Shown here piece by piece: positions 2,873-48,407 of a DNA stretch of 64,000 nucleotides. Source of the DNA: Anthoceros angustus (taxonomy: Eukaryota > Plantae > Anthocerotophyta); contig MU008171.1 in NCBI GenBank assembly GCA_010909165.1, forward strand, positions 992,001 through 1,056,000, given 5' to 3'. Numbering within the stretch: position 1 is the first letter of the stretch; each line of letters begins with the position of its first letter. The position numbers were made by a program, and so were the translations under genes. The notes beneath the pieces were generated by a model, which made no database searches, was not told the origin of the DNA, and was given only the letters and a program-made list of their open reading frames with translations.

Positions 2873-2905
2873 GGGTGGTAGCATGGTTTGGTGGTACACT
2901 TTAGT
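2873..2905 (+). repeat. Left TIR of the Sola-like element
   Basis: gggtggtagcatggtttggtggtacactttagt matches the reverse complement of 17578-17609. Confidence 0.8.
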
Positions 2906-4675: not shown

Positions 4676-7285
4676 GGTCTTGGCATGAAGGAGACTACAA
4701 CTTGCGGGTGGAAGGAGTGGATGTTCGCCAAAGCAAGTTGCAGCAAGGTTTGAGGGAGGCAGTGGGCGGCGGGACGTGCTTACCCTCGGTTTGGGGTGAG
4801 GCAGCAATGATGCTTATGGGTGGAAGGGATCAGATAAGCTGTCAGACAAGGAGTGGAGAAACATCGACGACTTGGTTTTCAAGATATACGGCAAGCGAGT
4901 TAGTACTGGGGGGCAGAAGATCCCTAGGTTGATGGCCATTGGCATCCTTGTTGAGAAAAAGCTGCACAGGTCTGTCAGTTGGCTGGCCTATGCACAGAAA
5001 ACTAATGAGGTAAAGGCCTCCAAGCACAAGAAATGTGAGGACATGGAGAAGGATAAGAAAGTGCACAAGGAGAAGGAGACCCCTGGATCACATGGCCCTA
5101 TGGCGAGGTCACGAGCAAGGGAAGGGCAAGAAGGCATGTTGGGGCGGTGTCCTCGGACTCGAGGACACCGTGATGAGGAGACAGTGGCCGGTGGAGAGCA
5201 AGACCCAAAGGAGGACTTGCATGCAGGGCGTGAGCAAGAATGTATTCAAGAGGAGGTTGATGTCATAGCTGCGGTGAGGAGGAAACCATCTTTGTTCGGA
5301 GCGGAGGATGTAGAACCGGAGGCAGTGCAATGTCGTGGGTTTTCCTTATAGTTTTAGATTCCCTGCGGTTTAAGATTCACCGTGAGTGCTACCCTTAGGT
5401 CATGTGCTTTGCTTAGGACCTGCAGGACTGCCTTGAGCGCTCATTTGGAAGGGTTTGTTCCACGGTTTTCGCATCCATCACGTTTAAGGTTTGAGCTTGA
5501 TTTATGTGAGCTTGCTCTTATTGATTGCATGAGGAGCAACAAGCTTGACAAGTTCTTTGCTGGTCTTGGCATGAAGGAGACTACAACTTGCGGGTGGAAG
5601 GAGTGGATGTTAAGCAAGTTGCAGCAAGGTTTGAGGGAGGCGTGGGCGGCGGGACGTGCTTACCCTCGGTTTGGGAATAGAGGCAGGGCAATGATGCTTA
5701 TGGGTGGAAGGGATCGGATAAGTCGGACAAGTGGAGAAACATCGGACTTGGTTTTCAAGATATCTGACAAGCGAGTTAGTCTTGGGGCGGAAGATCCCTA
5801 GGTTGATGGCCATTGGCATCCTTGTTGAGAAAAAGTTGCGCAGTCATGGGTTGGGGTGGCCTATGCAGAAAACTAATGAGGTAAAGGCCTCCAAGCACAA
5901 GAAATGTGAGGACATGGAGAAGGATAAGAAAGTGCACAAGGAGAAGGAGACCTGGATCACATGGCCCTATGGCGAGGTCACGAGCAAGGGAAGGGCAAGA
6001 AGGCATGTTGGGGCGGTGTCCTCGGACTCGGACCGTGATGAGGAGACAGTGGCCGGTGGAGAGCAAGACCCAAAGGAGGACTTGCATGCAGGGCGTGAGC
6101 AAGAATGTATTCAAGAGGAGGTTGATGTCATAGCTGCGGTGAGGAGGAAACCATCTTTGTTCGGAGCGGAGGATGTAGAACCGGAGGCAGTGCAATGTCG
6201 TGGGTTTTCCTTATAGTTTTAGATTCCCTGCGGTTTAAGATTCACCGTGAGTGCTACCCTTAGGTCATGTGCTTTGCTTAGGACCTGCAGGACTGCCTTG
6301 AGCGCTCATTTGGAAGGGTTTGTTCCACGGTTTTCGCATCCATCACGTTTAAGGTTTGAGCTTGATTTATGTGAGCTTGCTCTTATTGATTGCATGAGGA
6401 GCAACAAGCTTGACAAGTTCTTTGCTGGTCTTGGCATGAAGGAGACTACAACTTGCGGGTGGAAGGAGTGGATGTTAAGCAAGTTGCAGCAAGGTTTGAG
6501 GGAGGCGTGGGCGGCGGGACGTGCTTACCCTCGGTTTGGGAATAGAGGCAGGGCAATGATGCTTATGGGTGGAAGGGATCGGATAAGTCGGACAAGTGGA
6601 GAAACATCGGACTTGGTTTTCAAGATATCTGACAAGCGAGTTAGTCTTGGGGCGGAAGATCCCTAGGTTGATGGCCATTGGCATCCTTGTTGAGAAAAAG
6701 TTGCGCAGTCATGGGTTGGGTGGCCTATGCAGAAAACTAATGAGGTAAAGGCCTCCAAGCACAAGAAATGTGAGGACATGGAGAAGGATAAGAAAGTGCA
6801 CAAGGAGAAGGAGACCCCACGGATCACATGGCCCTATGAGGTCACGAGCAAGGGAAGGGCAAGAAGGCATGTTGGGGCGGTGTCCTCGGACTCGAGGACA
6901 GTGATGAGGTTAGACAGTGGCCGGTGGAGAGCAAGACCCAAATGAGGACTTGCATGCAGGAGGCGTGAGCAAGAATGTATTCAAGAGGAGGTTGATGTCA
7001 TAGCAGGTGAGGAGGAAACCATCCCGAGGCGGAGGATGTAGAACCGGAGGCAGTGCAATGTCGTGGGTTTTCCTTATAGTTTTAGATTCCCTGCGGTTTA
7101 AGATTCATGAGTGCTACCCTTAGGTCATGTGCTTTGCTTAGGACCGGACCTTGAGCCTGCTCATTTGGAAGGGTTTGTTCCACGGTTTTCGCATCCATCA
7201 CGTTTAATGTGTTTGAGCTTGATTTATGTGAGCTTGCTCTTATAGATTGCATAGAGCAACAAGCTTGACAAGTTCTTTGCTGGTT
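4676..7285 (+). repeat. Three tandem copies of an 865-886-bp unit containing a degenerate Lys/Glu-rich ORF
   Basis: ctacaacttgcgggtggaag occurs at 4695, 5581 and 6446. The ORF-track translations at 5382/6247 and 5610/6475 are identical. Confidence 0.9.
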
Positions 7286-7639
7286 TTGACTTAGCCTCGA
7301 TCTTGTAAAGTTCACTTACGTTGCTAAGCTGTCTTTGTTTGTGTGAGCTTGGTGTTTTCGTGGATTCGAGATAGACTCTTGCGGTAGCTCAATTGTGAGG
7401 ATTCTTCACGGGAGGGGAGGGGAGGGAGAGGGGCCTCATGGGCATTCCGACATCTATCTGGTGCAGTTTGGCAGGGGGGCCACTAGGCACATCAACACCT
7501 AGTGGTGTCTTGTCATGTCGTCATGTCTGCATGTAGTGTATGCTTGTCATGTCGTCGTCCGTTGTGCAGTCCGTCATGCATGGCCGGGTGGTGATACGGT
7601 GACGTCTTGGAGTGTGGCGATTTCTTGATGTCGTGTATT

Positions 7640-8160
7640 CACGCGGTGGAAGTGACATTTGTTCATCTTGTCATCATGTCACGTTACTGTAAGCATTTGT
7701 TCATCATCATCGTGTCACGTTGTGCACACTGTAGGCATCTTCATCTTGTCATCGTATCACGTTGTGCACGCATCATTCATCGTCATCATGTCACGTTGTG
7801 CACAGAGCCTCTGTTCATCGTCATCATCTCACGTTGTGCACCGTGGGCAATTGTTCATCTCATCATGTCACTTTGTGCACTTGTGGGCATTTGTTCATCA
7901 TCATGTCACGTTGTGCACACTGGGCATTTGTTCATCTTGTCATCATGTCACGTTGTGCACATGGGCATTTCTCCGCCGTCATGTTGTCATGGACATCTTT
8001 ACAATTCGATGCCATTGTTATTATGTGACATTGTGGACACATGTGCAGCTATTCATCTGGCATTCTGTCACATTTTTGGACCTGTGGGCACTTTCTCATG
8101 TTGTCTTCTTGGGTGGCATGGTGGACATGTTAGCATTTCCTCAAGTTGTCGTGTGCACAC
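7640..8160. repeat. Degenerate short tandem repeat (catcatgtcacgttgtgcac core, about 40-bp period)
   Basis: Repeated catc(a/g)tgtcacgttgtgcac and ggcatttgttcatc motifs. Confidence 0.75.
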
Positions 8161-8261
8161 TTGTTTTCGTGTGTAGGGATACGCTAGAGTTGCACACAAA
8201 GATCAAAAGCATGGCGGTGGAAGACCTCATCTCCTTGTCGAGCAAGAGACCGGTTCGGTGA

Positions 8262-9045
8262 TTGCAAGCGAGGAGACAAGCAACCTTGCAGCAGCAAAAT
8301 TGCTCTAGGGGAGCTCACAGCGCCCTTGGCGCAATCTGCTATAACAAGGAGGTGCGGTTATGTGGAGCGGTCATCAACTTCATACTCACGAGCGACCTAA
8401 TTATATGCATCGCTGCGGTAGAAGATGCACATGTTGCTCGTGTCCAGGCACAATTGCGTGCAGTGCAGGAGGCGGCGGACAATCTGAGAGCCAACAACAA
8501 AAAGCGTGACGCCCTCCAACGAACTGTTAATCTGGCGGAGGATTTACATGATGCCTTTGGCCGCATACATAGCTTGACGCTCAAGAAAGAAAGGACTCCT
8601 CAATGGATTCCAGCCCCTTCTTACACTAGCCAGAATGTAGCCCTCCAGATCACGAAGTGCTGCGTGTGCACCAGGTACTTCTGCCGCCGTATGCATGCCT
8701 TGTTTCGTGTACTGAGATCTGTTCCATGCATCTAACTGCAATTGGTTTTGTGGTGCTATGTAGGGGATTCGGATGCTATGACTTTGTTTTCCTCCCTTGT
8801 GGGCACTGTTTTCACGATGTATGCCTCTACCAACACATGCTGGTCAGGGTGACTGCCCCAATCCTGCTTGTTCTCTTCAAGTCCCGGCACAGTGGCTGCA
8901 GGCCAAGGGTTGGCCATTCACTAGTGGAGTCCAACGGATGCACAGGAGCGTGACCGAGGAGAGTGGAGAGCATTATCATGGTACTGCAAGAATTCCACAT
9001 CATGGAGCACCGTTTGGAAGAATTGTTGGGGGTGCTGCAGGATAG
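8262..9045 (+). CDS. Spliced coiled-coil plus RING-H2-like zinc finger gene inside the transposon
   Basis: Splicing a GT-AG intron at 8675-8763 (branch tctaac about 8731) gives KCCVCTRGFGCYDFVFLPCGHCFHDVCLYQH. One frameshift later comes GDCPNPAC, giving C-x2-C...C-x-H-x2-H-x2-C...C-x4-C. It is preceded by a helical segment VARVQAQLRAVQEAADNLRANNKKRDALQRTV. The start is uncertain. Confidence 0.65.
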
Positions 9046-9379
9046 TGCCCCGGTGACTCACATAAGAAGGCGGTTCATGAGTCTCACAGTTAGTAGTGCT
9101 CTAAGGTTGTTGCTTTGCATGGAAAAGCTATATCTGACCTTGTGCTAATAGCAATTCGCTTGTCCCTAGGCACATATAGTAGTGCCTGTCCTCGCTTGGC
9201 GGTCTTGAGGCGTTGATCACACCACCACGTGGGCAGCGGCCACCTATCCCAAAGCGATTCGTGCCTCATACAATGCACAACTATGTCATGGAGTCGCCAG
9301 ATCTGGTGGTCCCTGTGTCTCAAACCATTGAGTCGGTGAGCCGCTACTACGGTGCGGTGGCAGCGTGTATTTGGCCCAC

Positions 9380-29747: not shown

Positions 29748-30308
29748 AGTTGGAGTCTTCTTGTTGCTCTCGTCGTGGGCCCTTTTGGAAATGGGGACCG
29801 ATGACTCTTGCCTAGTGAACAGGCCTCACAAATGCCAAAAATCTTCAATCACTGGTGAGTGGAATGCTTGCATTGCTGGGTTTTAACATGTCCTTCATCC
29901 AGAGTGTGCATATGGCCAAGGCGGGCATGCCACAAGTAAGACTCACTCGTGCTTGTGGTGGTAGATAGGGAGGAAGGTGGGCAGAGGAGAAGTTGTGACA
30001 TTCGGTGATAGAGGTCGTCGTCTTTCAAGTCCCTGGCTATTAGATCTCCTTGTAAAGTCTCAATGCAGTGACCTCCACCAAAGCACACATAACATAGGAT
30101 TGATCAACCTTCCGGATGAAAATAGGTTCTTCGTCAAGCCGGTGCCGTACGTCGATATTTGTAGGGTAGAATTAGGCTTGACATGCGGTCTCTGATTCGT
30201 GACGAAATGGTGTGTTGGTATCGTCCCCAAGGTGAAATGGGGAGGTGTGGTGGGGTTGACTTGGCTAAAATATTCACGATGTGGTGTCATGTCTTTGGGA
30301 TGCCCGGA
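29740..30308 (-). pseudogene. copia-A' continuation (protease and pre-integrase) downstream of the CACTA insertion
   Basis: (G)AS..MTPHREYFSQVNPTTPPHF.LG, YLWHARLGHM, GICEACSLGKSHR and LQLVH. Joins WYIDS at 46622. Confidence 0.85.
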
Positions 30309-30689
30309 CACTACTACATTTGAGGATCCAAAACAACGCTCCAAAACAACGGTTGGAAAAGGCGTTATTTCTTAGGTTCGGAGCCATACATCGTTTGGTG
30401 TGGATTTGGGTACGGCTAGGTCTGGGTAATTCTTAACGGGTAATTTGAATTCTTAACGAGTAATTTTATTTCTTAACAAATAATTTTAATTCTCAATGAT
30501 TAATTTTAAATTTAATAAATATAGTATATAATTAATCAGATATTAAGTAAATAATGGAGTACACTTAACGCGGCTTCATCTGGACCCAACGGGTCCCGTC
30601 CCGTTATAACTTGTTGAACTTAGCAACCGTCCGAATCCAACGGGCCCCGTCCCACCTAATGTGCACATCCCATCTCGTTAGAGTTGAGA

Positions 30690-31085
30690 AGCCCATCCGT
30701 CCCATTCGATCCTAAGGAGCCTTTCCCGTCCCAACGGCTCCGTCCGATCCTAACGGTTCCGTTCAGCCCTAACGGTAACAGCTCCGTCAAGTTCGGTCCT
30801 AAGGAGCCTGTCCTGTCCCAACGGCTCCGTCCGATCCTAACGGTTCTGTTCAGCCCTGACGGCTCCGTCCGATCCTAACGGTTCCATTCAGCCCTAGCGG
30901 GAACAGCTCCGTCCGATCCTAACGGTTCCGTTCAGCCCTGACGGCTCCGTACGATCCTAACGGTTCCGTTTAGCCCTAGCGGGAACAGCTCCGTCAAGTC
31001 GCATCCCCGTCCGGAACAGCTCCGTCAAGTCGCATCCCCGTCCGGAACAGCTCCGTCAAGTCGCATCCCCGTCCGGACCTGACGG
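30690..31085. repeat. CACTA subterminal repeats (ccgtccgatcctaacggttccgttcagccct; ccggaacagctccgtcaagtcgcatcccc)
   Basis: Multiple direct repeats within 400-800 bp of the left TIR, as is typical of CACTA ends. Confidence 0.8.
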
Positions 31086-31461
31086 GACTCGCATATCCGA
31101 GTGTGGTGAGGACCCTCAAAAGGGTGGATTGAAGATACTGGGTTTGAAACCGGGTCTCTCCAACCCGAAACTCAAAGACAAACCACTAGAACAATGCATC
31201 ATGCTTTACCTGTAGCGTTGTTTTTACATATACATCAGTTTGAAAACAACAAATTTAAGTGTCATCTTCGTTCGCATGCCGATCAGACACATATACCTCC
31301 CGCTAAACCTGCCAGGCCTATAGGCAACTCAAGGAAAAGGGACAATTCGCATCGTCTGGACTCTACACTATGATGGCTCGGCTTTCTACAGTGTCGTGTT
31401 GCTGCCCTAACAAACCACAGTATTTCCAGTCCTCTACATTGTGTACTCTACTCTTATTTGC

Positions 31462-34400
31462 TTAGGGGATTCTGGTATACCTGGATGGGCATTCCACAAC
31501 TAGACTCCAACCTTCCTGCGTTGAGAATGGCGAATCATGGAAAAACACCTGCGTGACATGTTCAGGGAATGCAAAGGGCCCTGACCCATCTTCTGTTCCA
31601 CAGTTGTAGAGCAACTTGCGGTTTACTAAAGAGAATCCACTCAAGTCCTCTTTGAGGGATGGAGTCCTCCCACTTGGCTTACACTCATACCAATTCACCC
31701 TAAATATGAAATGATCCTCCTCCCACATTTCATGCGATGATTTGTTGGATGTTACCATAAAATGGCCGTGCTTGCTCATCATCTCCGACAATCCAAACCC
31801 CGTAACACCACTATCCTGTGACTTTTCTATGCTTGTGCATGCGCCTATGCGATAGTGGTAGCCATAAGCCTTGAGTCCACGATACTCCTCGGTTTTCGAG
31901 GAGGGCTGCTATATCCTGGGTGTCATGTCGAGGCCATCGGCCTTCGTCGATGGTGGCGTAACCATTGTCTAAAATCCTTTTCACGAGTTAAACCATTTTC
32001 CACCTCGTCTACATGGATAGCCAAGTATGGAGCCATGGCTTTCATATTCATCAAGATGTACTTGTGCATGCGCCTATGTTCATCTTCCCGTAAGATTATA
32101 GGCTTCCCTTTCCCAATAGGAACTTGAACATGATGTGCATCTTCATCGCAATTGACCGCAAGTGATTAGCTCTAGGGTACATTTCCTCAAAAGGACTTGG
32201 CATATAACATGGCCTCCATAGCTAGGTATCCAGCAATGCTGCCCTCGTCCTTACACAAAGATCTTTAAGCACTTTCAAATAACGCTCTATAGGGAACATC
32301 CAACGATGCATGGGCCGTGTGTTTCCACCTCTCCAACAAGATGCACAATCATGTGCATTTGTATATCAAACAACTGGTTGGAAAAAGTCGTTCCATTTCC
32401 ACCATGACTTCTCGGCCTCTAATTTCATGTCTTGCACTTCACATACAAGAACCTCTTTTCGGGTCAACCACCGAATAAGCTCAACCGGGCAACAACCGAG
32501 AACACCTCCTCATCGATGAAGCCACGTAGGGCTATAGGTAGAAATAAAGCATAAGGACATACCAATCATGGGACTTGAATCACAAGCTTTCGACCAACTT
32601 CGCACATATTCGAGCGTAATCCGGTCGGAGGTCGAATATCAAGCATAAAACGAGTTCAAGATTCTCCTTTGTGAGAACCCATGCGACTTGGAAGCAAATA
32701 GTGGTCAGGTCTCCGGTGTATTGGTTGTGGCCACATGCTCGACTTCTTGTTTCCTTCTGAGATCCTCTCTTGTTGCCAAGTCGCTCTTTGCCCAACCAAA
32801 GTATACCATAAGTCTTCGCCACATTCTTGATGATATGCATCCGTCCTTCCCACCAAATGGGTTCTCCAAGTGCTCCGTAAGGTAAGATGTCATACCCAAC
32901 AAAACTACGTTTACCCCCATTTTCGATCCGTAGTTCAATCCCCGCTTCCAATTCGCTTCTCGTATGATGTCTTGGTGAGTTGCCTCTCCTCCCACTTCAC
33001 CCAACTCGCTGACCATGAAACGGCTCTACATCATGCGACCTATGCGGATGTGGCAATGGTAGCAACTTCCTGCGCCGATAGATACTCTTTGCAACGTTGA
33101 CTGCGATGATCAATGCGAGACCAACAAGTTGGACAAGCTCTATATCCCCACTGTAGTCCGAGAAGAAACTCCAGCCCCATAAAATGTGATAGTGTTCACA
33201 ATTGCGACGCGCTTGAAATTACGGCTTGGGTCGGATACATCCGGATGCATCCACAACAAATACTCTGTCCAAAGTTCTCAAGCTCTTCATACATAGGCTC
33301 CGAAGATATCCGCATTTGCAACTTTGTGAGGCCACAGTATCAACACCGCATCATGATATATTGTTTCTTGAATGCAATCCAAGGAGGAAAATTTTGGTTG
33401 ATGAGCAAAAGCGGCCAAGTTGATCGAGTAGAGGTCCGCATTCCAAAGCGGGATACGTCATTGCAAGTGTGAAGTGAATATTTCTTGGATCGTCACCAAA
33501 ACCATCGAGCATCAACAGAGTGATGCGGTGAGTCGCAAATATGGCCATTCTCCTGTTGTACTCTGTTGGTAACATGTGAAGACATCTCAAGCAAGATCAG
33601 CACACCTAAATAATCGTTGCAACCTAGGGATCACCGGAAGTACCACATACGCTTACGTGCCACGGTGTCGTGCACCACGTTCCTTTCTCATATCGGTACT
33701 CACCACACTTCCTGCAAGTTTTACGCTTCCGTCCATAGGTCCTCTAAAAGCGGGCAGTCTCCAATACACGTCAATTTTCTCATAGTCTTGGCCAACATGT
33801 AGCACTTCTGCATCCCTCGCGTTTTGGCATATTATTGGGCTTGGAAGGGCTCTAGTTGCCAAGAATCCAAATAAAGCATTCATAAAGACGTCGATACCTT
33901 GAATTGCATTTGCATATACAACAAGTGCAACGTTGTAGTCAAACAGTTCTCTTGAACCCTCACACAACTTAGTCTCTTTTCTCTTATTTTGTTGCGCCAA
34001 GGATCCTCATCATCCTCACCAACATTCATGGACTCTAGATAGGCTTCGTGGCGGCAATGCTATCGCTAGTTCTTGAAATGATCCTCGCCATCCTCCAGCT
34101 TGTCATCATCCGATGTGAGGAGGAGAAGTGAGGAACTCGTCTTCGATGTATTGTCACTTTCATCGAATTGGAGCCCCTTCATACCACTGGTGCATCGTCA
34201 AGCGGTGGTGAAAGCCACCTTCTACACTGCGATCACTCTTCCTCACCTTCTACACCAGCAATTACTCTTCCCCACCTTCTACACTGGACACAATTCCTCT
34301 TCCCTCACCATCACTTCCTGTTCCCTCACCATCACTTCATGTTCCCTTAAAAGCGCATGCAATGTCGGGCGGAATGATCACCTCTCGCCCACCCTTGGTT

Positions 34401-35487
34401 TTGACAGATGGGGCAAGGGCAAGGCATCTGGGATATCTCGATTCTGAGCAACGGCGAACTCGGGCTCGATTCTATCGCAGCTCCATGGCTGGTGCTTCAC
34501 GGCGAACATTCCTTGTCCAAGTAATGTCGTCATTGGGCATGGTCCTTGCCATTGCGCTCACCACCCCACCTCCTATATGTGGACCACGATATTCGGGCAA
34601 GCTTTTGGGGCAAGGCGGAGGTTTTTCTTTGCGCAAGCAAAAGCGAGCCTCTCAATACACGCCAATTTTCTCATAGTCTTGGCCAACATGTAGCAGTTTC
34701 CTGCATCCCTCGCGTTTTGGCATATTATTGGGCTTCGGAAGGGCTCTAGTTGCCAAGAATCCAAATAAAGCATTCATAAAGACGTCTGATACCTTGAATT
34801 TCATTTGCATATACAACAAGTGCAACGTTGTAGTCAAACAGTTCTCGTCGGAACCCTCACACAACTTAGTTTGTGCTGCTACTCTTATTTTGTTGCGCCA
34901 AGGATCCTCATCATCCTCACCAACATTCATGGACTCTAGATAGGCTTCGTGGCAGCAATGCTATCTGCTAGTTCTTCGAAATTATCCTCGCCATCCTCCA
35001 GCTTGTCATCGTCATCCGATGTGAGAGGAGAAGTGAGGAACTCGTCTTCTGATGTATTGTCACTTTCATCAGAATTGGAGCCCCCTTCATACCCTGGTGC
35101 ATCGTCAAGTAGGTGGTGAAAGCCACCTTCTACACTTGCAGTCACTCTTCCCTCACCTTCTACACCAGCAATTACTCTTCCCCCACCTTCTACACCTGGA
35201 CACAATTCCTCTTCCCTCACCATCACTTCCTGTTCCCTCACCATCACTTCATGTTCCCTTAAAAACTGCATGCAATGTCGGGCAGAATGATCACCTCTCG
35301 CCCACCCTTGGTTTTGACAGATGGGGCAAGGGCAAGGCATCTGCAGGATATCTCGATTACGAGCAACGACGAACTCGGGCTCAGATTCTATCGCAGGCTC
35401 CATGGCTGGTGCTTCACGGCGGCGACGAACATTCCTTGTCCAAGTAATGTCGTCATTGGGCATGGTCCTTGCCATTGCGCTCACCAC
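31462..35487 (-). pseudogene. CACTA TnpD-type transposase, frameshifted, 5' part tandemly duplicated
   Basis: CPCPICQN (transposase-associated; about 34400 and 35330), MHIIKNV, HRWMFPIERYLKVLKDL (about 32290), and FRVNWYEC...PFAFPEHVTQVFF (DUF4216-like). The 33700-34690 segment repeats at 34650-35580. Confidence 0.85.
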
Positions 35488-35579
35488 CCCACCTCCCTAT
35501 ATGTGGACCACGATATTCGGGCAAGCTTTTGGGGCAAGGCGAGGTTTTTCTTTGCGCAAGCAAGAAAAGCGGTGAGGCG

Positions 35580-37030
35580 AGCATATATAGCAAACTGCGG
35601 ACTCGAGCTCTCCTCTTTAGCGACTTGGTGGAAACTTGGATCGAAATGGTTAGCTCGATCGACCTTGCACAGATCGTGAATCGTGTAGACTTGATGTGGT
35701 GACATGTACATACATCCCGAGGGTATCGCCCATGGACAGCTAGCATTTGAGTGAGTGGTGAAAGCCGCATACATATCCAAGTGCCTTGCGGATGGACTAA
35801 ACTCCTTCCGAGCAGTGACTGCATACACCGCTCTTTGAATGCGCCATGTTTTGATCCGCATTGCGTTTTCAAGATGAAAATGCACGCAAATTAGTTAATT
35901 GGGTGCATTCGTGAGGAGCTGCGGTTGGGTTGTAGAGTTACCGCTTAGCAACGCGATGCTCGCAAGAGGGTACATTACGTAGACCTTGCTAATGTATACT
36001 GTAGAAGAAGCGAGATATCATAAGTAGTTGGTACTTAAAGTACAAGTGTGATCACGTCAGCGCGGCGGTGAATCGAGCCGATGGGCGGTCGCGATCGGAG
36101 ACTACGACCGCCTAGCCTAGGGCTGCGAGTGGCGCTCCGTGTAAGGTTGCGGCGTCTGCGAAACACATCGACTGAACAAAACACCACGAGCATCGACGCC
36201 GATCGACCGCTTATATCTTGTTCATCGAAGCGGGGGGGAGACACCAACCCGATTAATCTCGCGCAGCCAAGAAAAGCAAGAAAGGAGTAGCAGGGGCGAG
36301 CATATATAGCAAACCTGCGGACTCGAGCTCTCCTCTTTAGCGACTTGGTGGAAACTTGGATCGAAATGGTTAGCTCGATCGACCTTGCACAGATCGTGAA
36401 TCGTGTAGACTTGATGTGGTGACATGTACATACATCCCGAGGGTATCGCCCATGGACAGCTAGCATTTGAGTGAGTGGTGAAAGCCGCATACATATCCAA
36501 GTGCCTTGCGGATGGACTAAACTCCTTCAGACGCAGTACTGCGGTACCGCTCTTTGAATGCGCCATGTTTTGATCCACATTGCGTTTTCAAGATGAAAAT
36601 GCCGCCGAGCAAGCCTTAGTTGGTGGCATTCTTGGTGAGGAGCTGCGGTTGGGTTGTAGAGTTACCGCTTAGCAACGCGATGCTCGCAAGAGGGTACATT
36701 ACACCACAGACCTTGCTAATGTATACTGTAGAAGAAGCGAGATATCATAAGTAGTTGGTACTTAAAGTACAAGTGTGATCACGTCAGCGCTGGCGGCGGT
36801 GAATCCAGCCGATGGGCGGTCGCGATCGGAGACTACGACCGCCTAGCCTAGCTGCGAGTGGCGCTCCGTGTAAGGTTGCGGCGTCTGCGAAACACATCGA
36901 CTGAACAAAACACCACGAGCATCGACGCCGATCGGCCGCTTATATCTTGTTCATCGAAGCGGGGGATGAACCCGATTAATCTCGCGCAACCAAGAAAAGC
37001 AAGAAAGGAGTAGCGGTGAGCATAGCAAAC
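35580..37030. repeat. Tandem duplication of about 720 bp in the CACTA bidirectional spacer
   Basis: gcatatatagcaaa..cttggtggaaacttggatcgaaatgg occurs at about 35580 and 36300. aaagtacaagtgtgatcacgtcagcg occurs at about 36037 and 36764. Confidence 0.9.
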
Positions 37031-38031
37031 TTGCGATCACGCTATCACTTTCATCGACCTCTGCAAACTTGCATCGATTGCAAGCCTCACGATGTTTTAA
37101 ATGACGTGCTTGGGGTGGCGGGAACTTCAACCCACCGAGGAAGGCTAGAGGCTCGAGCCGGACCGTATCCTAGATACCACACCTCCGTGGCAGCGACGGA
37201 ACTTTAACCCACCCGGTAGGGAGGCTCGGGCCGGACCGTGCAAGCTTCATGCTATCCTGCCAAGTATGCCGGGTATACCCAAGCGAAGATTGCAAGGTAG
37301 CGATTTGGTTGTAGGAAGCATTGAGCACGTTGTTGGGCACTTGCTGGGCACTTGTTGGATCGCAACCATGTGAGATAGTGGTCGTGTCTATAGTGATCCT
37401 TCACGAAATCGCTAGCAGCAAAGCGACTTTTGATGTACTCCACTTTGTTCCCTCCAGAGAGAATCCTCCAGCTTCCTCTTCTGCGATGGCACTCCTTCTT
37501 CAGTGTTCAAAACCCGCTAGGGCCTCAAGTGAGTGCCTCTTGCGTGGTTATTGGAGAAATGGAGTATGTGGCATAGGTGTTTGATGTGATGGCCAAGACC
37601 TCACCATTTTGTGATTGATGATAACAAGCGCCAAGTCGCGTTGCCTTTGTCCCACGCGTCCACGTCTCATCTCACGTCGTTGTCAAGTGAAAATCGTCAT
37701 CATCATTTCCCATTGCTCTTGAATTTTCATGATTCGCACCAATTTGACCTCGCATGTTTTGTCACTCACTCGCTTGCTCGCTCTCCAAAGGCGATGGCGC
37801 GCCAACAAATTTGGCAATAGATGATGGATCGGGGTATTGGCTTGTGGATGATGTCGAATGTCAAGTAGCGGTAAGCTCTGAGCGACATGAGGAAGGCATG
37901 TTGGAGGAGCTCCATGCGAACAAGGTTTGGAGCGGCGAACAAGGACGATATGGAGGAGAGGTGGAAGCTAGTTTCAAGAAGCCGGAGGCAAGTTTCAGCA
38001 GTGTAGTCATCGACCGGGCGGTCATGCATCG

Positions 38032-39381
38032 TTGGGCGAGGTGCAAAACACATTAGCGGCAATCCATCCTAACACGATCTTAGACTATGTGGTAGATCGT
38101 ATGGGGCGGGCAGCTGTCCTTTCTGCAATGAGGGGATCGAGGAGGAATCCAGAACAAACCATCGAAGTGGAGGAGATGGAAGAATTAGAAAACAATGATC
38201 GCGATATTGCCTTTGGTGGCGCTGATTACGAAACTTGGAAAAAAGCATGTGCTCGGATACGAAGATTGGCGGCAGCAAGGTTGGATGTCCACAGGGCATG
38301 GAGTGCTCACAGTCTGGAGAGAAGATGCGAGTTAATACATATCATTACCTCAGAATTTCCCACCGTCACTAACACATCTTTGATCGTGCAAAGGTTCTCT
38401 CAATGTCTGTAAGAGCAGTGCCTTAAACAAGGCCGCAGAGCTTCGAGCTATAGCGATTGTAACCTTTGGGGCGTTCAAAGGATAAGAAAAGCTAAGATGC
38501 CTTCTTGGGCGAGCCGGTCTTTGACAAAAGTGTAGAGGCGTAAATTGCGATTCTAAAGAGGAAAAATGCCGGGGAAGCGATTGCGGTGAAACAACAAAAG
38601 CAGGCAGCTTCCTCTCGGAGTAAGGAAGCGCAATCCCTTGGCGGGGTGGCGAGAGGCGCTTGCGAGCTTCGAGCTATAGCGATTGTAACCACCGGGAGGC
38701 GTTCAAAGGATAAGAAAAGCTAAGATGCCTTCTTGGGCGAGCCAGCCTTTGACAAAAGTGTAGAGGCGTGCGATTCTAAAGAGGAAAAATGCCGGGGAAG
38801 CGATTGCGGTGAAACAACAAAAGCAGCTTCCTCTCGGAGTAAGGAAGCGCAATCCCTTGGGCGGGTGGCGAGAGGCGCTTGCGAGCTTCCTTCAAGAAGA
38901 AATGGGAAGGAATCCTACAGGCGGTGGCCTACGCAACAAAAGCAGGGTGAATAATATGGAAGAGTTCTTAGCTGCTCGTAGCAATCCTAATGATATCGTA
39001 CAAAATGGAGAAAGCGATTGGAAGCGGAGGTGAATCTGGAAGCCGTGGAATCAAGATGTGGGCGGAGGCGTGAATCTGGAACTTGTGGAAGATGTGGGCG
39101 GAGGCATGAATCTGGAAGCCGTGGAATCGGAAGATGTGGGCGGAGGCGTGAATTTGGAAGCTGCGAAAGTGGAAGCTATAGAATCGGAAGCCGTGGAATC
39201 GGAAGCGAAGCAGTTAAAAAATGTGGCAGGCCAATCTTCTACAAGACCACGCAGGGCATGTACGATGCAACAGCCTATGGTTGCTGCCTGCGATAGGAGG
39301 AAGAAGAAGGTGGTCCCAATAGCAAACAAGAAACAGAAGCTGAGGACTTCGTGCCCATTCCCCCTAGGTATCACTAAGTAG
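38032..39381 (+). pseudogene. Putative second CACTA ORF (TnpA-like), divergent from the transposase
   Basis: Protein-like frames 38032-38412 (YETWKKACARIRRLAAARLDVHRAWS..IITSEFP) and 39058-39381 (acidic repeats, basic RRKKK tail). The assignment is positional only. Confidence 0.4.
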
Positions 39382-40279
39382 CAGACACGGATACCTTGCG
39401 CCCTTTGTAGATGCCGACAGCAGCATCACCTCAACATGTAACAGAATGATCTCTGAAAATGTAACATGTAACGGACTTGGTGTCCTGCCGCGAGTATGAT
39501 TCGGAACTGTTGCCCCCGAGCTCTACTTTCGGCTAATATAACTGCCTTGGCTTGCGTCACCTTTCGGCGTTCGCTTTGCCATGGCGGATTGCAGCATCCA
39601 CAAATTGCATCTTGGGCCTACATTTGCCTCTCGCAAGATATCAGCAACATACTTCTGATCGGATCGGTGTTACACTTGGAACGCTCGAGACAAGGCCAGT
39701 TGTCAAAGCATCCAGATTTCGAGGATCCTTTCTTGCAGCTTGTCTACACGGGAGTTCGTGCTTGGGGCAAGGACGACCTAAGCTCGGATGCCGGTTTGGA
39801 GCGGATTCGGAGGCGGATTAGAATGTCTTTGGAGGATGTGCTTGGAATCGGAGTCGACTGTGGACCAAGAGAAGGAGAAGCGGCGGAGACTAGGTACCTT
39901 GTGCTCTAGAACCCTTGTGCTCTAGGATTGCCTTGTGGCTCATGGATGGAAGGCTGTATTCTGCTGCTGGTGTCGGTGCATTGATGCTGTATGTTGCGCA
40001 GTGTCTTGTGAGACGAATAATTGGCCACCAAGGAGCGGGGCCGCAAAGGTGCCGGTGAGAGTGCCTTGTTGGCGGTCCATCCATAGCGCAAGGAAGCCGA
40101 TTCGGAGACCAGGGATGATGATGAGGAAGCCGTCGTGCGATCGGAGGCCAGGTCAAGAAACACATGGGCATATTGAAGATGGCTTGTCACGCTGATTCTC
40201 CTGCTTGTCCCCAAGTTAGAGCAAGTTCCGATGTTGATGAGCTTTCATCGATTCCGAACTGTGCCCGTGGTTCCGCCAC

Positions 40280-43200
40280 TTCTGTTGAAGGTAACAAGGT
40301 TGGGCTAAATGCCAAGGTGGCATCCGCGGCACCTTCAGCACCCGCAGCCTCCGCGGCTTGGCAAGCTATCGAGAAGGTGGTGCTGGGAGAAGCTAGAGGT
40401 GGTGGATGAGGAGGAGCAGGTTGAGATTGCACCGGTGACATCGCTGATTTTCCTCTCGATCTTGATGGCCGCCTCCCTTTTACCTCATTGGCCCATGAAG
40501 AGGGTGGAGCCAATCCGTACCGTCTATCTCTTTGGGAAGGTGGATCATCTCCCAAGCGACTTGGAAATCTGCCGTCATGCGACTGGGACCGTGATGGTTG
40601 GAATGAAGTTGGAGTCGCCTGTGCTTCTGCAGTTCTGTTTGGTCGTAAATATGTCGTTGCTACGTTGTCGTGCGGAACATTCAGCGGTGCGTTTATGCCA
40701 TTCCTGCTCAGCGTCTTCCACAGAGCTAGCGCTGCTCAAGGTCTTTACAATCGGACGGAATGCGAGTGGCTTTGATTGCCAAGTTGCAGTTATCTTCTCT
40801 TCACTTTTTACTTCTTTACAGGAGTAGTTTGTTGTTTGGTCACTTGACTCTTGGAGCCCGTCCGATCTTGTAGGAGCTGGCAGGTGACGTGAAAGATGAG
40901 ATTGCTCAAAAGGCTGGATCTTAACGTGGCGAAGTTCACCATGGTTCCCGTGAAGGTAGAATGCACGCCTTTTGCTGTAACGTGTGTGACTTGTCATAGC
41001 AATTGCTGAACAAGGTGTTTTCTTCGCTTTTGCATTGCAGAGGTCATCAGCGTTTGAACGACCAGATGTGACAAGTGGGGAGCACTACTTCATAAAGCTA
41101 AGCTACCCTTTCAAGGTTTGTGAAACGTTGCTTTTACACAATGGTCGAGGTTACAAGAAGGGCATTTGACGTGTCGAGTCACTACATCGTGATTTAGGAT
41201 ACATTCCAGATTTGAAGTGCGACATTTTCGGCTTCTTTGGGACACAAACCGAGTTCAAGCTCTGAAACATAATGTGTGTTCACTTTTCTGCCACAAGTTG
41301 TTGTCCGTTGTTCGCGAAGTTCAGGTCTTCGCTTTTCCCGGTGGTTTCACATTTGTTATCGGCAGTGCCCTTGAACTCCTGTTAATTAAGAAAAAGATCA
41401 AAGGACCATGCTGGCTGTCAAGAGCAAATCCTGTGTTTCGTTCGAGCCCTTCTCAGGTGTCTGCTCTACAAATCTGTCTGGTTTATCCTGCTCGTAGTCA
41501 TGTTGAATTGCTGCCATACTCCGTCCTGTTTGAGATCTAATCCTTCTCTTTTCTTCTCTCTATCGTTTGGAAAGCAGGTTAGCTAGTGCAAGCTCAGTTG
41601 TTTACTGTCACCAAGTACAGGTTGGTCGTTGCCTCCGGCGTTTGCAGCTCCGTGCTTGGTAGAGCATTTGTGTGTCTCTCTCATTTTTCTCTGGCCTTTA
41701 GTGAGAATTCGTCACCTGACTAACTCAAGCCATCCCTGGACGCATTTGGACTTTGAAGGGGACGTGCAGATGTTATCAAGCCATTGGAACACCCACAATA
41801 TGCTTAATCCACTTCAGCGTGGTGCGAAAGCTTGATGGAGGCATTTTTGTGACTTCCACCAATGCCAAAGCCGGCTCAAATGTCTTAAGCTGCAAAGGAA
41901 GGTATAAAGCTATCGTTCCTGCTATGCTGCCAACGGAAGTGAATGAAAAATTCCTCTGCTACAGCAAAGCTTGGAAGTCCATCTAATTCTCATTTTGCTA
42001 TCAGTGAACGAGCTATATTAAACAACTTAATGATCAAGTTGCACCAGCTAAATGCGGATATCTTGGTGGGGCACAACATTTCTGGATTTGACCTTGATGT
42101 ACTCCTTCACCGGCGGTAGGAGTTTTTCTACTCGACTGGTTGGCCTGTATGGTTCAATATGGTTTCCCAGTCGTGATCACTCCATCCACAGTATCTCATG
42201 ATTTCTCATGGACTCTTTGTTTCGAGATCTAATAGGCTTGTAAAGTTCAAAGCGGTATGTGGTAAAAATTGGGGTGAAGCTTCCTCTTCTGCGATGAAAT
42301 GCTCTGTGATGCCCAAACTCAATGGAGGTGGGAATACCTTGGTCAGGAGCTGGTCCAGGAGCTATGGCTGCATTGTTGGTCGGTGTTATGTGACACTTAT
42401 CTCGTGACCTTGTTAAAGAGGTAGGAACTGGCTGTTTCTAACACTGCTTAGCGCCAGAACTTGTGAAGACAGTAGGGACTGAATTTTCTTCACCCTGTTT
42501 GATGTAGGTAAGCTATTCACTAAAGCAGCTCTCCAAGAGCCAGCTAGGTCGGAGAGGAAGGAACTTATACCTTGAAATTCCATCCATGTACAAGACATCG
42601 GCGTCCTTATGTGGTGGGCAAAAGCTGTGGTGGGGCAGCCATGTTGCTTCCAGCCATCAAGATCGCTTGTTGATCTCTGCTTGCCAAGGAGTTAAGCAAC
42701 ATGCCTTGATATCATTTTGGAACGGCTGGTACTAACGACGCTCTGGGTATTTCCTTTGCAGGTTGAATCAGGCGATGCAGCTTTCGTTGAGTTTGATGTC
42801 TCATTTGAATGTGCTGCCATTGACTAGGCAGCTAACCAACATCAGTGGAAATCTCTGGGGAAGACTCTGCGGTGAATACAGCTCATGTTTTATTTGCTCC
42901 TTTATGCAAAACGCCAACTCTTGCTGGTGATGGTGAGGGATGCTCTAGATCTTTGAGTGATTTCAACTAGAAATTACAGACTCACAATCCTCATGTGACA
43001 GGGAGCAAGGGCACAGAGTTGAGTATCTGCTGCTCCATGAGTTTCACAGCCGCAAGTTCATTGTCACGACAAACTTACTCTCCGAGAAAGAGCGAATTGC
43101 TGTCAAGTGGAAGAAGTTGTCAAGCCTCGAAGTCGATGATGGAGAAGAACTGGTCTTTGGAGATGAAAATGTCCAGGAAGAGACTCTTGCTGGGCCACTT

Positions 43201-44640
43201 GGAAAGCGGGAAAAAGGCCCTGCTTATTCAGGTGGACTGGTTCTGGAACCCAAAAGGGTCTGTATGACAAGTACATCCTCCTTCTCGATTTCAATAGCCT
43301 CTACCCATCCATCATACAAGTGAGCCCTCACTCACAAGCACTTCCCATTCATTTGTTCTTGATTCTTTTCTCCTTTCAGGCCCTAGAGCAACCTTGACCA
43401 TGTTTTGAGCCTGCAGGAATACAATATATGTTTTACAACCGTAGAACGATCTGAGGATACTATTCTGCATTACCAACATGCGACACTCCTGGAGTTTTAC
43501 CCAGGTACATGGCTTGCAACGTTTAGTTTTTCTGTTAATGGCAGTCCCAATTATTTCTGATCACATGAAGTATGATTTGTTGGGCTTAGGTTCTCAAAAG
43601 CCTGGTAGAGGAGGAAGCAAGTGAAGCGAAACGCACGTCGACAACTTGAAGTATCAGTTGGATATTCAACAGCAAGCACTGAAGCTTACTGCCAATAGGT
43701 CAGTGCTTCGAATTTGAGCCCACTGCTCGTCTAGTTACATTTCCTGTTCCAAGTCCCAGAATTGTTCTTGCTTAGTTGACGCTGATGTGTCTTCTCGTTT
43801 GTTGTTTAGTATGTGCTTGAGGTTCCCAAATTCGCGACTTTATGCAAAACCGATAGCTGAGCTCATAACTTCCCAGGGCAGGGAGATCCTGCAAAGTACA
43901 GTGGACCTCGTGCAGAACACACTTAACTTTGAGGTCTGTGTCTCCTGCAGTCTTTTACTCGGAAGAACTCATTTTGATGCACAGCGTGCACTTGGCGTGT
44001 ACTACGAAAATGGTCAGTTATCTATGGAATCTGAGACTCAATAATGACCCACGCAGTCGGTGAGAGAGTTCCACATTAGACCCTTTCGGCTCAAGAGGAC
44101 CCATGACGAAGGCCCACGAGGGAGAGACTCACCCTCCGAGCATCCATAACCAACCCGAAAGGTGACATCTTGATTATGCCACCTGCTTTCTTCTCAAAAT
44201 TCTAGATCCCGTGATATGCGTTGATGTTGTGATTCGTAATTCCTTTCTGACTTGCCCCATCACACGGATGGCATAAGTTTGTCTATACACCGCAAGCCAA
44301 GGATTCTAAACCACTAAGTGACAAGCTGTTTTGTAGCGCAAGAGGAAATGAGGGTGGTCGGGTAGAATTGGACAAGTACATCATTACGAAGACTCTAACT
44401 AAAAATCCAGAGGAATATCCGGACTCACGCAACCAGCCTCACGTTCAAGTACGAGACAATGCTTACGCCTTGCCGTTTAAGTGAGGTGCTACTTTCACAT
44501 GGCATTTCAGCTCATCCATATATTTGATATTCCCCATTGTCTTGTGGCGGTCGCTCGAGGCGAAGACTAAGTGGGCATAGGATTGGCTGTTCGTTGGGGA
44601 CACTGTACCATCGTTATTTGTGTTGAGCGGTATTGTTTAC
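40280..44640 (+). pseudogene. POLA1: DNA polymerase alpha catalytic subunit, multi-exon partial copy with indels and stops
   Basis: Exons in order: TVYLFGKV, FTMVPVK|..AFERPDV, ALELLLIKKKIKGPCWL, HFSVVRKLDGGIF, ILVGHNISGFDLDVLLHR, VLPLTRQLTNISGNLW, AYSGGLVLEPK..LLLDFNSLYPSIIQ|EYNICFTTV, DIQQQALKLTAN, ITSQGREILQSTVDLV, VIYG..DSIM, KYIITKTLTKNPEEYPDSRNQPHVQV, GDTVP.VICVE. Confidence 0.92.
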
Positions 44641-46214
44641 TGCTTGCATGGTTTGTGTCTCCTCATTTATCAGCTGCTGGTGGCACGATCACGCCACCTC
44701 CAATCGAATCCATACTATCGGCCGTTTTTGGCCACCACGGAAGATGATATTTGGTGGCGGAAAGCGATTGGGAAGGATGGTCGCATGTTCCCGATTAGCA
44801 GCACCACCACCATAGTGGATTGCCCGGAGGCTCAACGGCTTGGAGGTACTTGAGGCGATCTTCACATGTTGTGCTATTTCGACTCTCACTTTGCATGACA
44901 TGTCCTTGTGCTGCTGCGATGTACACTCGTCCTCTCCCGATATGCTTGCAAACAAGCACATCATCGACATAAGGACATGGAACTTGTAATCACGTGGTGG
45001 TCCACGATAATGCACTGGGGACTTAGTGGCCCAATTGTGCTCCGCCTCTCGGCTGGGCGCCCATCGACTTTGTCATCGACTATGAAGGTACTGACTTGGC
45101 TGCTGTTTGTATCCAAGTGTGAGGATCGGCTTGTCGGAGGTCTGACGACGTCCACTTGGCAGGTAGGTATCCTGTGGGTCGATTTCATGCCTCACCTAAA
45201 CTCTGAGAGTGCCTTGGACAGCTTCTTAAAGCGCAAAGAGTCATTCATGGTACGTCCACAACTGCCCCTCCTCACCTGCTGCAGATAGAAGATCGTTACC
45301 TCCACTTGGTAATCTTTTTGCTTCTGCAGGTTTTTGAGTAGAGTGTGGCTACCATCTTCATACACACCATGCCAGGTTATGTTCTTTACAGGAGGTATCT
45401 TAGTTCATTGCCAATCAGTACAGTTTGATTGAAGCGCAGCTGCCCTTTCACATCGCGTTGGATCATCACAATCGGTGCTTAGCCTTTGTATGAGACCTAT
45501 CATGGCGCCTACATAAACATCCAGTCGGGACCACAATGTGGATCTTTTGCAGAGTGGAAGTGTGATTTTAGCATTTGCTTACCAACAAATTTGCAACTCA
45601 AAGACACTCGGTTCGGTTCTTGTTCCAATGCATGATCACCCCGAAGTGCTAAGGGGATATCTTGAAGGCTCCTTCTGCAAGTCTGAGTTCATGGTAGGAG
45701 GGAGGCTCGGCTTGCACGATTGGTGTTTTCCTCCAAATGAGTTGCAACTCATCTGTTGACCGTCTAAAGCGTGGTAAAGAAGCACCAAGTCCCTACATAC
45801 CTCCATGAAATTTGAATTGAGTGACCTTTAAGCTCAAGTGGCGGCATTCGACAAGGAAGTCGAGTTCGATTGTTTCTTTTATTTAGCTTTGAGGTATTGA
45901 GGCGAGATTATTATACTATCACTTCTCGCCTGCATATGTTCATACTATTGAGAAGCGGTTTGATCACTTTGGATATGGCGAGGCGAGATTATTATACTAT
46001 CACTTCTAGCCCTCTGTATATGTTGATACTACGAGGCGGTTTGATCTCTTTGGATATGGCGGAGTCCTTGATGACTTGGCTGCGGATAAGCGGACTCAAT
46101 TGACCTGGAGCATCCCGTTATCATCCCACCATTTTTTAGTAAAGTATTTTTATCGAGTAATTATTGTTTTATTACCCAAATGGGGAATAATAGAAACGGG
46201 AGTGGGAGCAGTGC

Positions 46215-46350
46215 ATCTGAGCGGGCGGGAGCGATGAGCAGGAGCGGTGGGCGAGAATAGCGGGCGAGCAGCGGGCGAAGCAGCGGGCGAGCGGGCAGCG
46301 GGCGAAGCAGCGGGCAAGCAGCGGGCAAGCAGCGGGCGAAGCAGCGGGCA
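46215..46350. repeat. GC-rich CACTA subterminal repeats (gcgggcgaagca)
   Basis: Tandem agcgggc(g)a(a)gc units, followed by cgttgtttt sub-TIR repeats at 46490-46600. Confidence 0.75.
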
Positions 46351-46621
46351 GGAATGTTGGGCGACAATGATGAGCAGGGGCGGTGGGCAGGGGCGTCAAT
46401 AGTAGCAGTGAACGGAAAGAAAGAACAGGAACGGGGTTGGGGGTATGGGTTAAATATGAGTTAGGAAAAACAACGGTTCCTAAATAACACAAAACGAAAA
46501 CAACGGTGTTTCGTTGTTTTCAGCTAGGTTCGGGTGGCCGTTGTTTTTCCAACTTTTCCGTTGTTTTTTACAAACATGCGTTGTTTTCACACGTTGTTTT
46601 GGATCCTCAAATGTAGTAGTG

Positions 46622-48407
46622 AGAATCTATGTACCAGGTGTGTTGTCCGTGTGCTGAAAGACATGAAGCTACGAGGGCTGAAGGTGGAGGGCTGGTCAGA
46701 CTAGGTAATTGGCTCACTTGCGTGAGAAAGGCCTTTGAGTGTCGCTTCATAGTGAGGGCGAGTTGCCCTGGTTGCCTTGGGTTGGCTGCAGCTAATCGTT
46801 TCCTGCATTCTTCGTAGGTGTGACCGGGGATTTTACAGTATCCACATATTGGTTTCCATGAAGGATTATAAGCTCCATGTCCTCTATTGCTGGGGTAAGT
46901 GCCCACGCCTCGTGTCTTGCCTCTAAAGTTGTTGCGGCCTCACCTTTGGATGCAGCGTCTGTGAAAAATGCTCTTGATGAAGATTCCCACAGCAAATGAG
47001 TGGCTGTAGTTTCCTTCTAGCCTCTTGATCGACATTGTCTTGATAACCTTGTTAATGATGAGAGGTTGTACGCCTTGTAGGGATTGACGACACCCATGAC
47101 TCGGCAAGGTGGACAAGAGAAGAGAGATCTTCTTGGATGGCCAAACTGTGGCGTAAACTTTGTCATCCGGCTCCTAAAGTGCATGGTATGTTGATCCACA
47201 GTCGTCTCGGACATTGAAGTCAGAAGAAATTTTAATAGTGTGCAGTGTGCATAATGTATTGAGGCATATATGTCGTATTTGTTTTCAAGCTTCACGGTCT
47301 CTACCGCGATTTCTTTGGGCGTTCCACGACCTCATGGATTGCATGAGGATGTTTTTAACTGTTGGTTTTATCTTCCACTCCTCTTTCTCTGCTGCGGTGG
47401 ATGCTGGTTGTGCTTTGACGAGGAGGGTTTCCGCGCCACCAACGAGGCCCATAGCTTACGTTCTTTCAAAATTTCGTAAGCGAAATTTCCAAGCAGTAAT
47501 TGTCTTGTTGGTCGAGCGGTCCTCTTTTGACATGCTGATGGAGGATGTGGCCATTGTGGTAAGTGCTATAGATTGGCTGCTTAGAGGGTGATAACTGTGT
47601 GCCTAAGTAGACATGTGGTTTCTACTTGGAGGGTGAGTAGAATTTTGTAAAGTCTGCAAGTGGTATTGGGAGCTGTTGGCCTCTAAGTGCTGCGGTTTGA
47701 ATGATGTTGTTTTGAAATTCTCCAATTTCGGTGTTGGAGGCAAGATGTAGAGGTTGTCCGGGTGAGCACAGCACTTTGAGGAGGCGGTTTTGCAGAGGTT
47801 TTGTAATGCATATTATGGATTCCTTAACTTGTCTTTGGATCAATTGGGGTGTGCCGTCAATCGTAGTTGTAAACCGCCTGATCATTGTGTGTTGTTTGGT
47901 ACCTTTTATTGTGTGTAGAGAAAGAGAGGTGTACGTATGCCCAATCATAGTCACGTGGGTCAACAAAGCCTCTCAAGTATAGTTCTTCAGCAATTACAAG
48001 AAGCACGGAGCGGTCCGGATCGGGCATAGTGCCATAGGTTTCCTTCGCTTCCTTGGTGGCACTCTCTGGCTTCTTTGAATTTCAGGGTTTGAGCAATTCT
48101 ATTTGCTCTTGAACCTCTGTTGCCTCTGCGTAAGCCCGGCATGCTTATAGATATTTATGTCTCATTGTTATGTCTGTAGATATCGTGCGGTGGCGCCTGC
48201 TCGATACCATGTGAAGGTCGCATATGGACCGGGATCGATTGTTCAAGAATGGATTGAATAATAAGCATGGCGAGGCGGTGCTCAAATACACAAGGGCTGT
48301 GCCCAAGCGTCATGTGTTGTAACCGTCACGTGACGTTTCGTTATGTGCCTATTAAGTTACGCTTTATGTGAATCGTGCCTAAGGGCTAGGGTGCTACATC
48401 GTTAACA
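46622..48407 (-). mobile_element. copia-A' 5' part: LTR, PBS, extra ORF, gag, start of protease
   Basis: LTR 48210-48407 (TGTTAAC...TTCACA) and PBS at 48199-48209. Gag ATG at 47554 (MATSSISMSKEDR), zinc knuckle CGYCKIPGHTYEEC, and GQLALTMKRHSKAFL shared with copia-A. Ends at WYIDS. Confidence 0.9.
47581..47885 (-). CDS. Homologue of the copia upstream extra ORF (one frameshift)
   Basis: MIRRFTTTID... versus MINEYTTSFD...; the C-terminal 20 aa are 11/20 identical to 507-788 with the same stop position. Confidence 0.6.

Follow-up and report, generated by a model that had tools for sequence, protein, structure and literature searches.

A CACTA-type transposon carrying an intron-bearing piece of POLA1, the DNA polymerase alpha gene, in Anthoceros angustus

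We analyzed a stretch of 64,000 nucleotides from Anthoceros angustus (Anthocerotophyta; assembly GCA_010909165.1, contig MU008171.1, positions 992,001 to 1,056,000 of the forward strand), which is referred to as the window in the following. It contains a CACTA element of 16,313 bp (30309-46621) bounded by perfect 30-bp inverted repeats. Between these repeats lie the remnant of a TNP2-type transposase, an intron-bearing fragment of POLA1, the gene of the catalytic subunit of DNA polymerase alpha, and a shorter fragment that probably stems from a second host gene. For the coordinates of all features see Table 1.

The CACTA element and its insertion site

The 30-mer CACTACTACATTTGAGGATCCAAAACAACG at 30309-30338 is matched by its reverse complement at 46592-46621 in 30 out of 30 positions. 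It is absent from the rest of the window, and the number of such pairs expected by chance is zero. The perfect CACTA repeats described in an earlier note on this DNA, which was made from the sequence alone, are therefore real. The inverted repeat can be extended to 43 nt at 91% identity. Both terminal inverted repeats (TIRs) open with CACTACTAC, the terminus typical of CACTA elements. Short subterminal repeats, a further property of this class, are found at both ends. The 8-mer AAACAACG, which is part of the TIR, occurs 13 times in the window (1.9 copies expected), and nine of the 13 copies are located no more than 45 bp from the left end or 155 bp from the right end of the element.

Table 1. 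Features of the CACTA element and its borders (positions refer to the window).
Feature	Position	Strand	Remarks
Left target-duplication copy, GGA	30306-30308		flank end reads GCCC-GGA
Left TIR, starts with CACTA	30309-30351	+	30 bp perfect, 43 nt at 91%
Left subterminal tandem repeats	30427-31077		units of 20, 38/82 and 31 bp
TNP2-type transposase remnant	31465-35500	-	many frameshifts; Cys-rich N-terminal part near 35300-35400
Abutting tandem duplication	33746-35563 (33746-34640 / 34639-35563)		~893-bp unit, 93.5% alike; repeats the 5' part of the transposase
Second internal tandem duplication	35576-37077		~720-bp unit
Captured genomic POLA1 fragment (DNA polymerase alpha catalytic subunit)	39830-44677	+	~4.85 kb, ~20 introns
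Exonuclease-like domain exon, SERAILNNLMIKLHQLNADILVGHNISGFDLDVLLHR	42003-42113	+	33/37 identical to the relative's gene
Polymerase motif A, DFNSLYPS	43287-43310	+	
Polymerase motif B, QQALKLTAN	43670-43696	+	
Rearranged stretch	44010-44156	+	146 nt versus 611 nt in a public genomic contig (record 5)
Damaged motif C	44017-44046	+	VIYGI*DSIM instead of VIYGDTDSIM
Second host fragment, intron-bearing; source probably an HI0933-like flavoprotein gene	44766 to ~45361	+	
Right subterminal cluster of the 8-mer AAACAACG / CGTTGTTT	46468-46599		7 copies here, a further 2 in the left TIR
Right TIR	46579-46621	-	same 43-nt repeat
Right target-duplication copy, AGA	46622-46624		

An empty counterpart of the insertion site is present in the window itself. 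The left flank of the element (30011-30305) aligns to positions 2126-1820 on the minus strand with a score of 154, and the right flank (46623-46920) to positions 1817-1521 on the same strand with a score of 190. The maximum score for shuffled sequences was 59. This paralogous site is a diverged retrotransposon copy at the start of the window (1521-2126, minus strand; 71-77% similar), in which both flanks are brought together and no POLA1 or CACTA sequence is found at the point in question. The filled site reads GCCC-GGA-[element]-AGA-ATCTAT and the empty site GCCCC-TGA-ATCTAT. The target duplication thus has the 3 bp characteristic of CACTA transposons, with one base changed. The sequence that received the insertion is the gag region of a copia-like retrotransposon, and a gag zinc knuckle is encoded in the right flank. 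Since the flanks adjoin in the paralogue and 3 bp are duplicated, the whole 16,313 bp came in by one insertion. Everything between the TIRs arrived as a single unit. With a single insertion point and a paralogue that lacks the element, the cargo moved along with the transposon, as is the case for Pack-TYPE elements.

Translations of the minus strand from ~35500 to 31465 resemble the plant TNP2/TnpD protein. In a scan of 35 translated pieces together, the Pfam family Transposase_21 (tnp2) matched at 33343-33492 on this strand with 34.5 bits (cut-off 28.6; E=1.6e-8). Two faint matches to DUF4218 were obtained at 32225-32418 (minus strand). A word-indexed protein search with the transposase piece gave no match. 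The TNP2/TnpD-type DDE transposase is present as a remnant only, without an open gene: the longest open reading frame (ORF) anywhere in the element comprises at most 186 amino acids, and the 893-bp tandem duplication breaks the gene further. The transposase named in the earlier note was thus recovered above the family cut-off, but as an internally duplicated remnant. As assembled, the element is non-autonomous, and its mobility would depend on a transposase supplied in trans. A probable second ORF had been suggested as well. We found neither a TnpA-like nor any other transposon family in 96 translated pieces covering 36900-39900 and 44650-46400, which is weak evidence because TnpA-like genes are poorly conserved; the suggestion gained no support from the region 36900-39900.

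The POLA1 fragment and its native counterpart

The POLA1 cargo was identified by several searches. Translated pieces between 42961 and 44481 matched the Pfam family DNA_pol_B, and an exhaustive profile search with a single 120-residue piece retrieved full-length polymerase alpha proteins. Among these, the POLA1 of Papaver (our reference P0019, 1541 residues, with all four POLA1 domains) gave the best result on the window; tblastn placed its residues ~348-1213 at 40458-44451. As a second reference we used L001, a public contig of 10 kb (Logan, SRR33208241) that contains the complete POLA1 of a relative at 1242-9376, with ~35 short introns of 80-160 nt. A spliced aligner reads through this gene without a stop. 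L001 is the best available template for the POLA1 cargo.

Frameshift-aware spliced alignment against both references located residues ~160-1240 at ~39820-44636. The cargo therefore spans residues ~160-1240 of ~1540, or ~70% of the coding sequence, and the gene is truncated on both its 5' and its 3' side. Window and L001 are collinear from L001 position 1819 (window 39820) through 7729 (window 44623). The offsets remain nearly constant, so that exon-intron structure and intron sizes have been kept, and the spliced aligner recovered ~20 introns in the cargo. This agrees with the statement of the earlier note that the capture took place at the DNA level: the introns are retained at the positions and with the sizes found in the relative's gene. 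The exonuclease-like domain, motifs A and B and the damaged motif C, all of which had been reported for more than 4 kb of spliced POLA1, could be located (Table 1). The exonuclease-like exon differs from a public mRNA contig by two mismatches and no gaps.

Outside the TIRs, tblastn revealed no POLA1 exons within the window, and a native gene interrupted by insertions is thereby ruled out. Some residues called by the spliced aligner beyond 44677 and upstream of 39820 were rejected, their identity being at chance level. The stretch beyond 44677 belongs to the transcript of another gene, and 39578-39818 matches different contigs that continue unlike the window on both sides. A word-indexed search with a POLA1 exon piece returned only relatives at no more than 56% identity, with no second copy or native gene among them; the exact look-up of one ORF of the window gave no record, and PDB sequence searches with single pieces gave no meaningful match.

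A fuller POLA1 locus became visible in public reads. Two public runs of one organism share sequence with the window (15% of its 31-mers in the DNA run, 7% of words in the RNA run). We aligned the contigs of both runs to 39500-45400 with a similarity floor of 80%. The genomic contigs are 93-97% alike to the cargo, exons and introns included (record 5: 44 mismatches in 1403 nt; record 4: 5 in 273). At the 5' side, the match to record 1 (2579 nt) runs from 41092 to 39830, beyond which this contig has another 1230 letters unlike the window. At the 3' side, record 5 matches as far as 44677, followed by 348 unlike letters. The breakpoints of the cargo thus fall within the long first exon (~39830) and within an intron (44677).

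The RNA run contains a contig of 1651 nt that differs from the cargo exons by 19 mismatches in 820 nt (~97.7% alike). In this contig 40953-41039, 41899-42003 and 42418-42506 are spliced out at GT..AG, in exact agreement with three introns of the cargo. Before 44338 it carries letters encoding ESIHNQLRK, an exon that is mostly lost in the window, and after 44628 letters encoding GSGGGSSSG, which is the next POLA1 exon. Since the public contigs part from the window at either breakpoint, and since a spliced mRNA is present, the native gene lies elsewhere: a fuller, expressed POLA1 exists, and the cargo was copied from the genomic DNA of its middle part. The earlier note had advised looking for the native gene and had named a sole POLA1 copy at this locus as the observation that would speak against its reading. 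The public locus, which departs from the window at ~39830 and 44677, shows that the cargo is not the only copy. None of the contigs of the public RNA run is 99% or more like the cargo, although Logan contigs drop rare variants. The RNA matches are best attributed to the native transcript, with no sign of transcription of the cargo, and this is weak evidence.

The cargo is dead as a polymerase. It is without the first ~160 codons and the promoter, without ~465 nt after motif C, and without the last ~300 codons including the zinc finger. Homology begins at residue ~160, and neither the gene start nor the N-terminal p180 domain (PF12254) is found upstream. After motif C, ~465 nt are missing in comparison with the public contig, and no homologue of the exons concerned is present in the window. 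The rearranged stretch at this position includes a short inverted piece, and the exons of the KKKKYA region are gone. The earlier note had estimated that about 100 residues after motif C are deleted, in line with the 146 nt that remain of 611, and had not found the C-terminal zinc-finger domain (PF08996), for which our searches of the whole window were likewise negative.

Motifs A, B and C do not stand intact in one frame: motif C reads YGI*DS, and the spliced aligner counts ~25 frameshifts in ~2.6 kb of exons, nearly all of them deletions of 1-2 nt. In a control on L001 the same procedure produced 3-4 spurious frameshifts in 4.5 kb. In every paralogue pair of the window gap openings equal or exceed mismatches, and overall both are roughly equal. 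The internal duplicates, for example, show 11 mismatches versus 20 indel events and 47 versus 59, and the excess of indels is also seen in ten abutting tandem duplications and in the cargo versus the public contigs. Normal sequence evolution gives a very different ratio, which points to an assembly with indel noise in which the ~25 small frameshifts are unreliable; the caution of the earlier note that many lesions may be sequencing errors was well placed. Two candidates for firm lesions were rejected for similar reasons. The two in-frame stops cannot be taken as firm substitutions, as MW*KLG turns into MWSKIG with one added C, and the stop in motif C disappears when three small indels of zero net length restore the motif. 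Given the indel noise, it is the structural lesions that carry the statement that the cargo is dead.

The window contains at least 10 abutting tandem duplications of 230-1750 bp with 80-95% identity (e.g. 4675/5561, 20911/22580, 24797/25216, 28469/28836, 48662/49872 and 51468/52280). They reflect either an indel-noisy assembly or a genome prone to local duplication.

A second host fragment starts 88 bp past the 3' breakpoint of POLA1. An RNA contig with a depth of 84 (compared to ~8) matches 44766-44851, 44941-44962, 45006-45050 and 45165-45249 and continues unlike the window on both sides. The fragment thus derives from a more highly expressed gene that is unrelated to POLA1. Read in frame with 30 loose letters of the contig, it encodes WFAEHGVPLK followed by IGKDGRMFPISSTTTIVDCPEAQRLG, and then GT is found at 44852. 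The next piece is matched by Pfam PF22780 (HI0933_like_1st) with E=4e-5, which falls short of the family cut-off. The pattern GRxFPxS is typical of the HI0933-like flavoprotein family, and the fragment probably comes from an HI0933-like gene. Ysc84 was discarded as an identity, since the sub-threshold look-alikes from the atlas search (score 0.80) are noise. Between the two TIRs, host gene fragments are therefore present as in Pack-TYPE elements, and it is typical of Pack-type cargo that unrelated fragments, here two, lie next to each other (PMC8903248).

Proposed origin and alternative explanations

Based on these results we consider it very probable that the locus is a defective CACTA (En/Spm-type) transposon with two transduplicated host fragments, which was cut and pasted as a unit and carries POLA1 as a dead passenger. 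The proposal of the earlier note that one CACTA element carries most of POLA1 is supported alike by the TIRs, the empty site and the limits of the cargo. We regard as established the ends, the insertion as a unit, what the cargo is and how far it extends, and the existence of a fuller, expressed POLA1. At an earlier locus the element would have taken up ~4.85 kb from the middle of POLA1 and would also have acquired at least 0.5 kb of the unrelated, probably HI0933-like gene. The composite would then have moved as one unit into the copia-like gag region, where the 3-bp target duplication was made. To move the element, a TNP2-type transposase would act on its CACTA ends and AAACAACG subterminal motifs, and the POLA1 piece, having neither promoter nor start, would travel as passenger DNA. 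The capture itself, as we infer, followed one of two routes. In the model published for Pack-CACTA elements (PMC6379663; review PMC13317346), two insertions take place near each other, and deletions then remove complementary parts of their termini. For an essential gene this route would need a spare gene copy. The other route is repair synthesis that switches templates once the element has been excised.

Several observations weigh against this interpretation. The target duplication is imperfect (GGA versus AGA), and the subterminal 8-mer is scarce at the left end. At the 5' breakpoint the similarity to the public contig amounts to only ~85%, near the floor of 80%, which makes the 5' limit (~39820-39830) less sure than the 3' limit. 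The organism of the public runs, related or identical to the present one, is possibly not the individual that was assembled. Moreover, assembly noise might render the small lesions, and even the internal tandem duplications, artefactual.

Uneven subterminal motifs and an imperfect target duplication would also fit with two separate CACTA insertions that flank a resident POLA1 pseudogene or duplicate, i.e. the precursor state of the model of Catoni et al. This arrangement is extremely unlikely, as a single retrotransposon lies outside both TIRs and is broken at one point with 3 bp duplicated, its paralogue has neither POLA1 nor CACTA sequence there, and no POLA1 is found outside the TIRs. An artefact of assembly, in which a chimeric join or collapsed repeats placed POLA1 between unlinked transposon ends, appears very improbable to us. 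Indels equal to or in excess of mismatches in every paralogue pair, the unusual frequency of abutting tandem duplications and a best public DNA run that holds just 15% of the 31-mers of the window could be cited in its favor. A chimera would, however, not yield a matched, complementary pair of TIRs exactly where the empty site predicts the insertion, with 3 bp duplicated, nor POLA1 breakpoints that are clean against independent contigs. Sequencing errors alone could account for both in-frame stops and nearly all small lesions by indels of 1-2 nt, and one may ask whether the sequence is simply the native POLA1 made to look broken. We find this scarcely conceivable: the first ~160 and the last ~300 codons are absent from the whole window, ~465 nt are gone after motif C, and the public DNA and mRNA contigs continue into sequence that the window lacks.

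The remaining alternatives concern a function of the cargo. Polymerase alpha mutants weaken silencing in Arabidopsis. With ~97% identity, the cargo is near enough to the native mRNA for cross-targeting by small RNAs, and it lies antisense to the transposase gene, between the transposase and the far end of the element, which is the usual promoter side of CACTA elements and would presumably be so here. An active cargo, whose antisense or small RNAs act in trans on the native POLA1, is nevertheless unlikely, in view of the lack of any RNA contig at 99% or more and of RNA matches that are best read as the native transcript. In an extended form of this idea, the CACTA lineage would spread an antisense POLA1 copy as a decoy, from which small RNAs lower the native POLA1, a factor in keeping chromatin silent, and thereby loosen the silencing of the transposon itself; we judge this to be very doubtful. 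The earlier note had left three fates open (dead cargo, source of small interfering RNAs, retained function), and of these dead cargo is clearly favored; the analysis gave no evidence of a function.

Relation to known systems and minor features

Capture of gene fragments by plant CACTA elements (transduplication) is a well known kind of event, and to call the present case striking, as the earlier note did, overstates it. The closest parallels are the Pack-CACTA elements of Arabidopsis (Catoni et al. 2019, PMC6379663; PMC8903248), which likewise have CACTA-type ends, a 3-bp duplication and intron-bearing genic DNA inside, can combine pieces from more than one locus and carry their cargo with them. 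Pack-TYPE elements are, however, short, non-autonomous and without transposase-derived sequence, whereas the element described here has 16.3 kb and a broken TNP2 with its Transposase_21 remnant. By the packFinder rule (PMC8903248) it would count as "autonomous or derived from autonomous". Tgm-Express1 of soybean (Zabala and Vodkin, PMC1947982), a CACTA element of 5.7 kb with five gene fragments (PMC2613891), is similar in that several host fragments have kept their introns. It is much shorter, though, and lacks a transposase remnant; its cargo was shown to be transcribed, whereas no cargo transcript was seen here. The Anthoceros element thus acts like Pack-CACTA or Tgm-Express1 and yet falls outside the strict Pack definition.

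With En/Spm and other autonomous CACTA elements (e.g. Tgmt*, 20.5 kb, PMC2613891) it shares the termini, the subterminal repeats, the TNP2/TnpD type and a size in the range of 8-20 kb. It differs from them by a broken, partly duplicated transposase, by the fact that no TnpA-like gene was found and by a content of about one third host DNA. The Pack-MULEs of rice and maize also represent transduplication by a TIR transposon, with pseudogene-like cargo that is sometimes a source of small RNAs, but they have Mutator ends, a target duplication of 9-10 bp and a MURA transposase.

The locus provides a clean, well-bounded transduplication, in which a CACTA element transported a large part of an essential single-copy gene together with its many introns. 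An empty site serves as control for the insertion, and the cargo can be told from the native gene by independent reads. Most such elements were described in flowering plants, and the present one lies outside that group. With a divergence of at most 2-3% from the native gene the capture is young, and given the native locus its mechanism could be read from the junctions. For annotation it serves as a warning that POLA1-like exons at this position are not the POLA1 gene. The locus would gain in importance only if small RNAs directed at POLA1 turned out to arise from the cargo.

Two minor features lie between the transposase remnant and the cargo. A 228-bp tandem pair together with a 42-bp minisatellite occupies 38438-38889 and 39030-39210. 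The minisatellite translates as a Glu/Ser/Gly-rich peptide in several frames, for which no family match was obtained. Immediately to the left of the POLA1 breakpoint, a segment of 240 bp (39578-39818) is ~85-90% identical to DNA contigs of two variants and to an RNA contig with a depth of 29.5, all of which continue unlike the window on both sides. Either a third capture or a small repeat could account for this segment.

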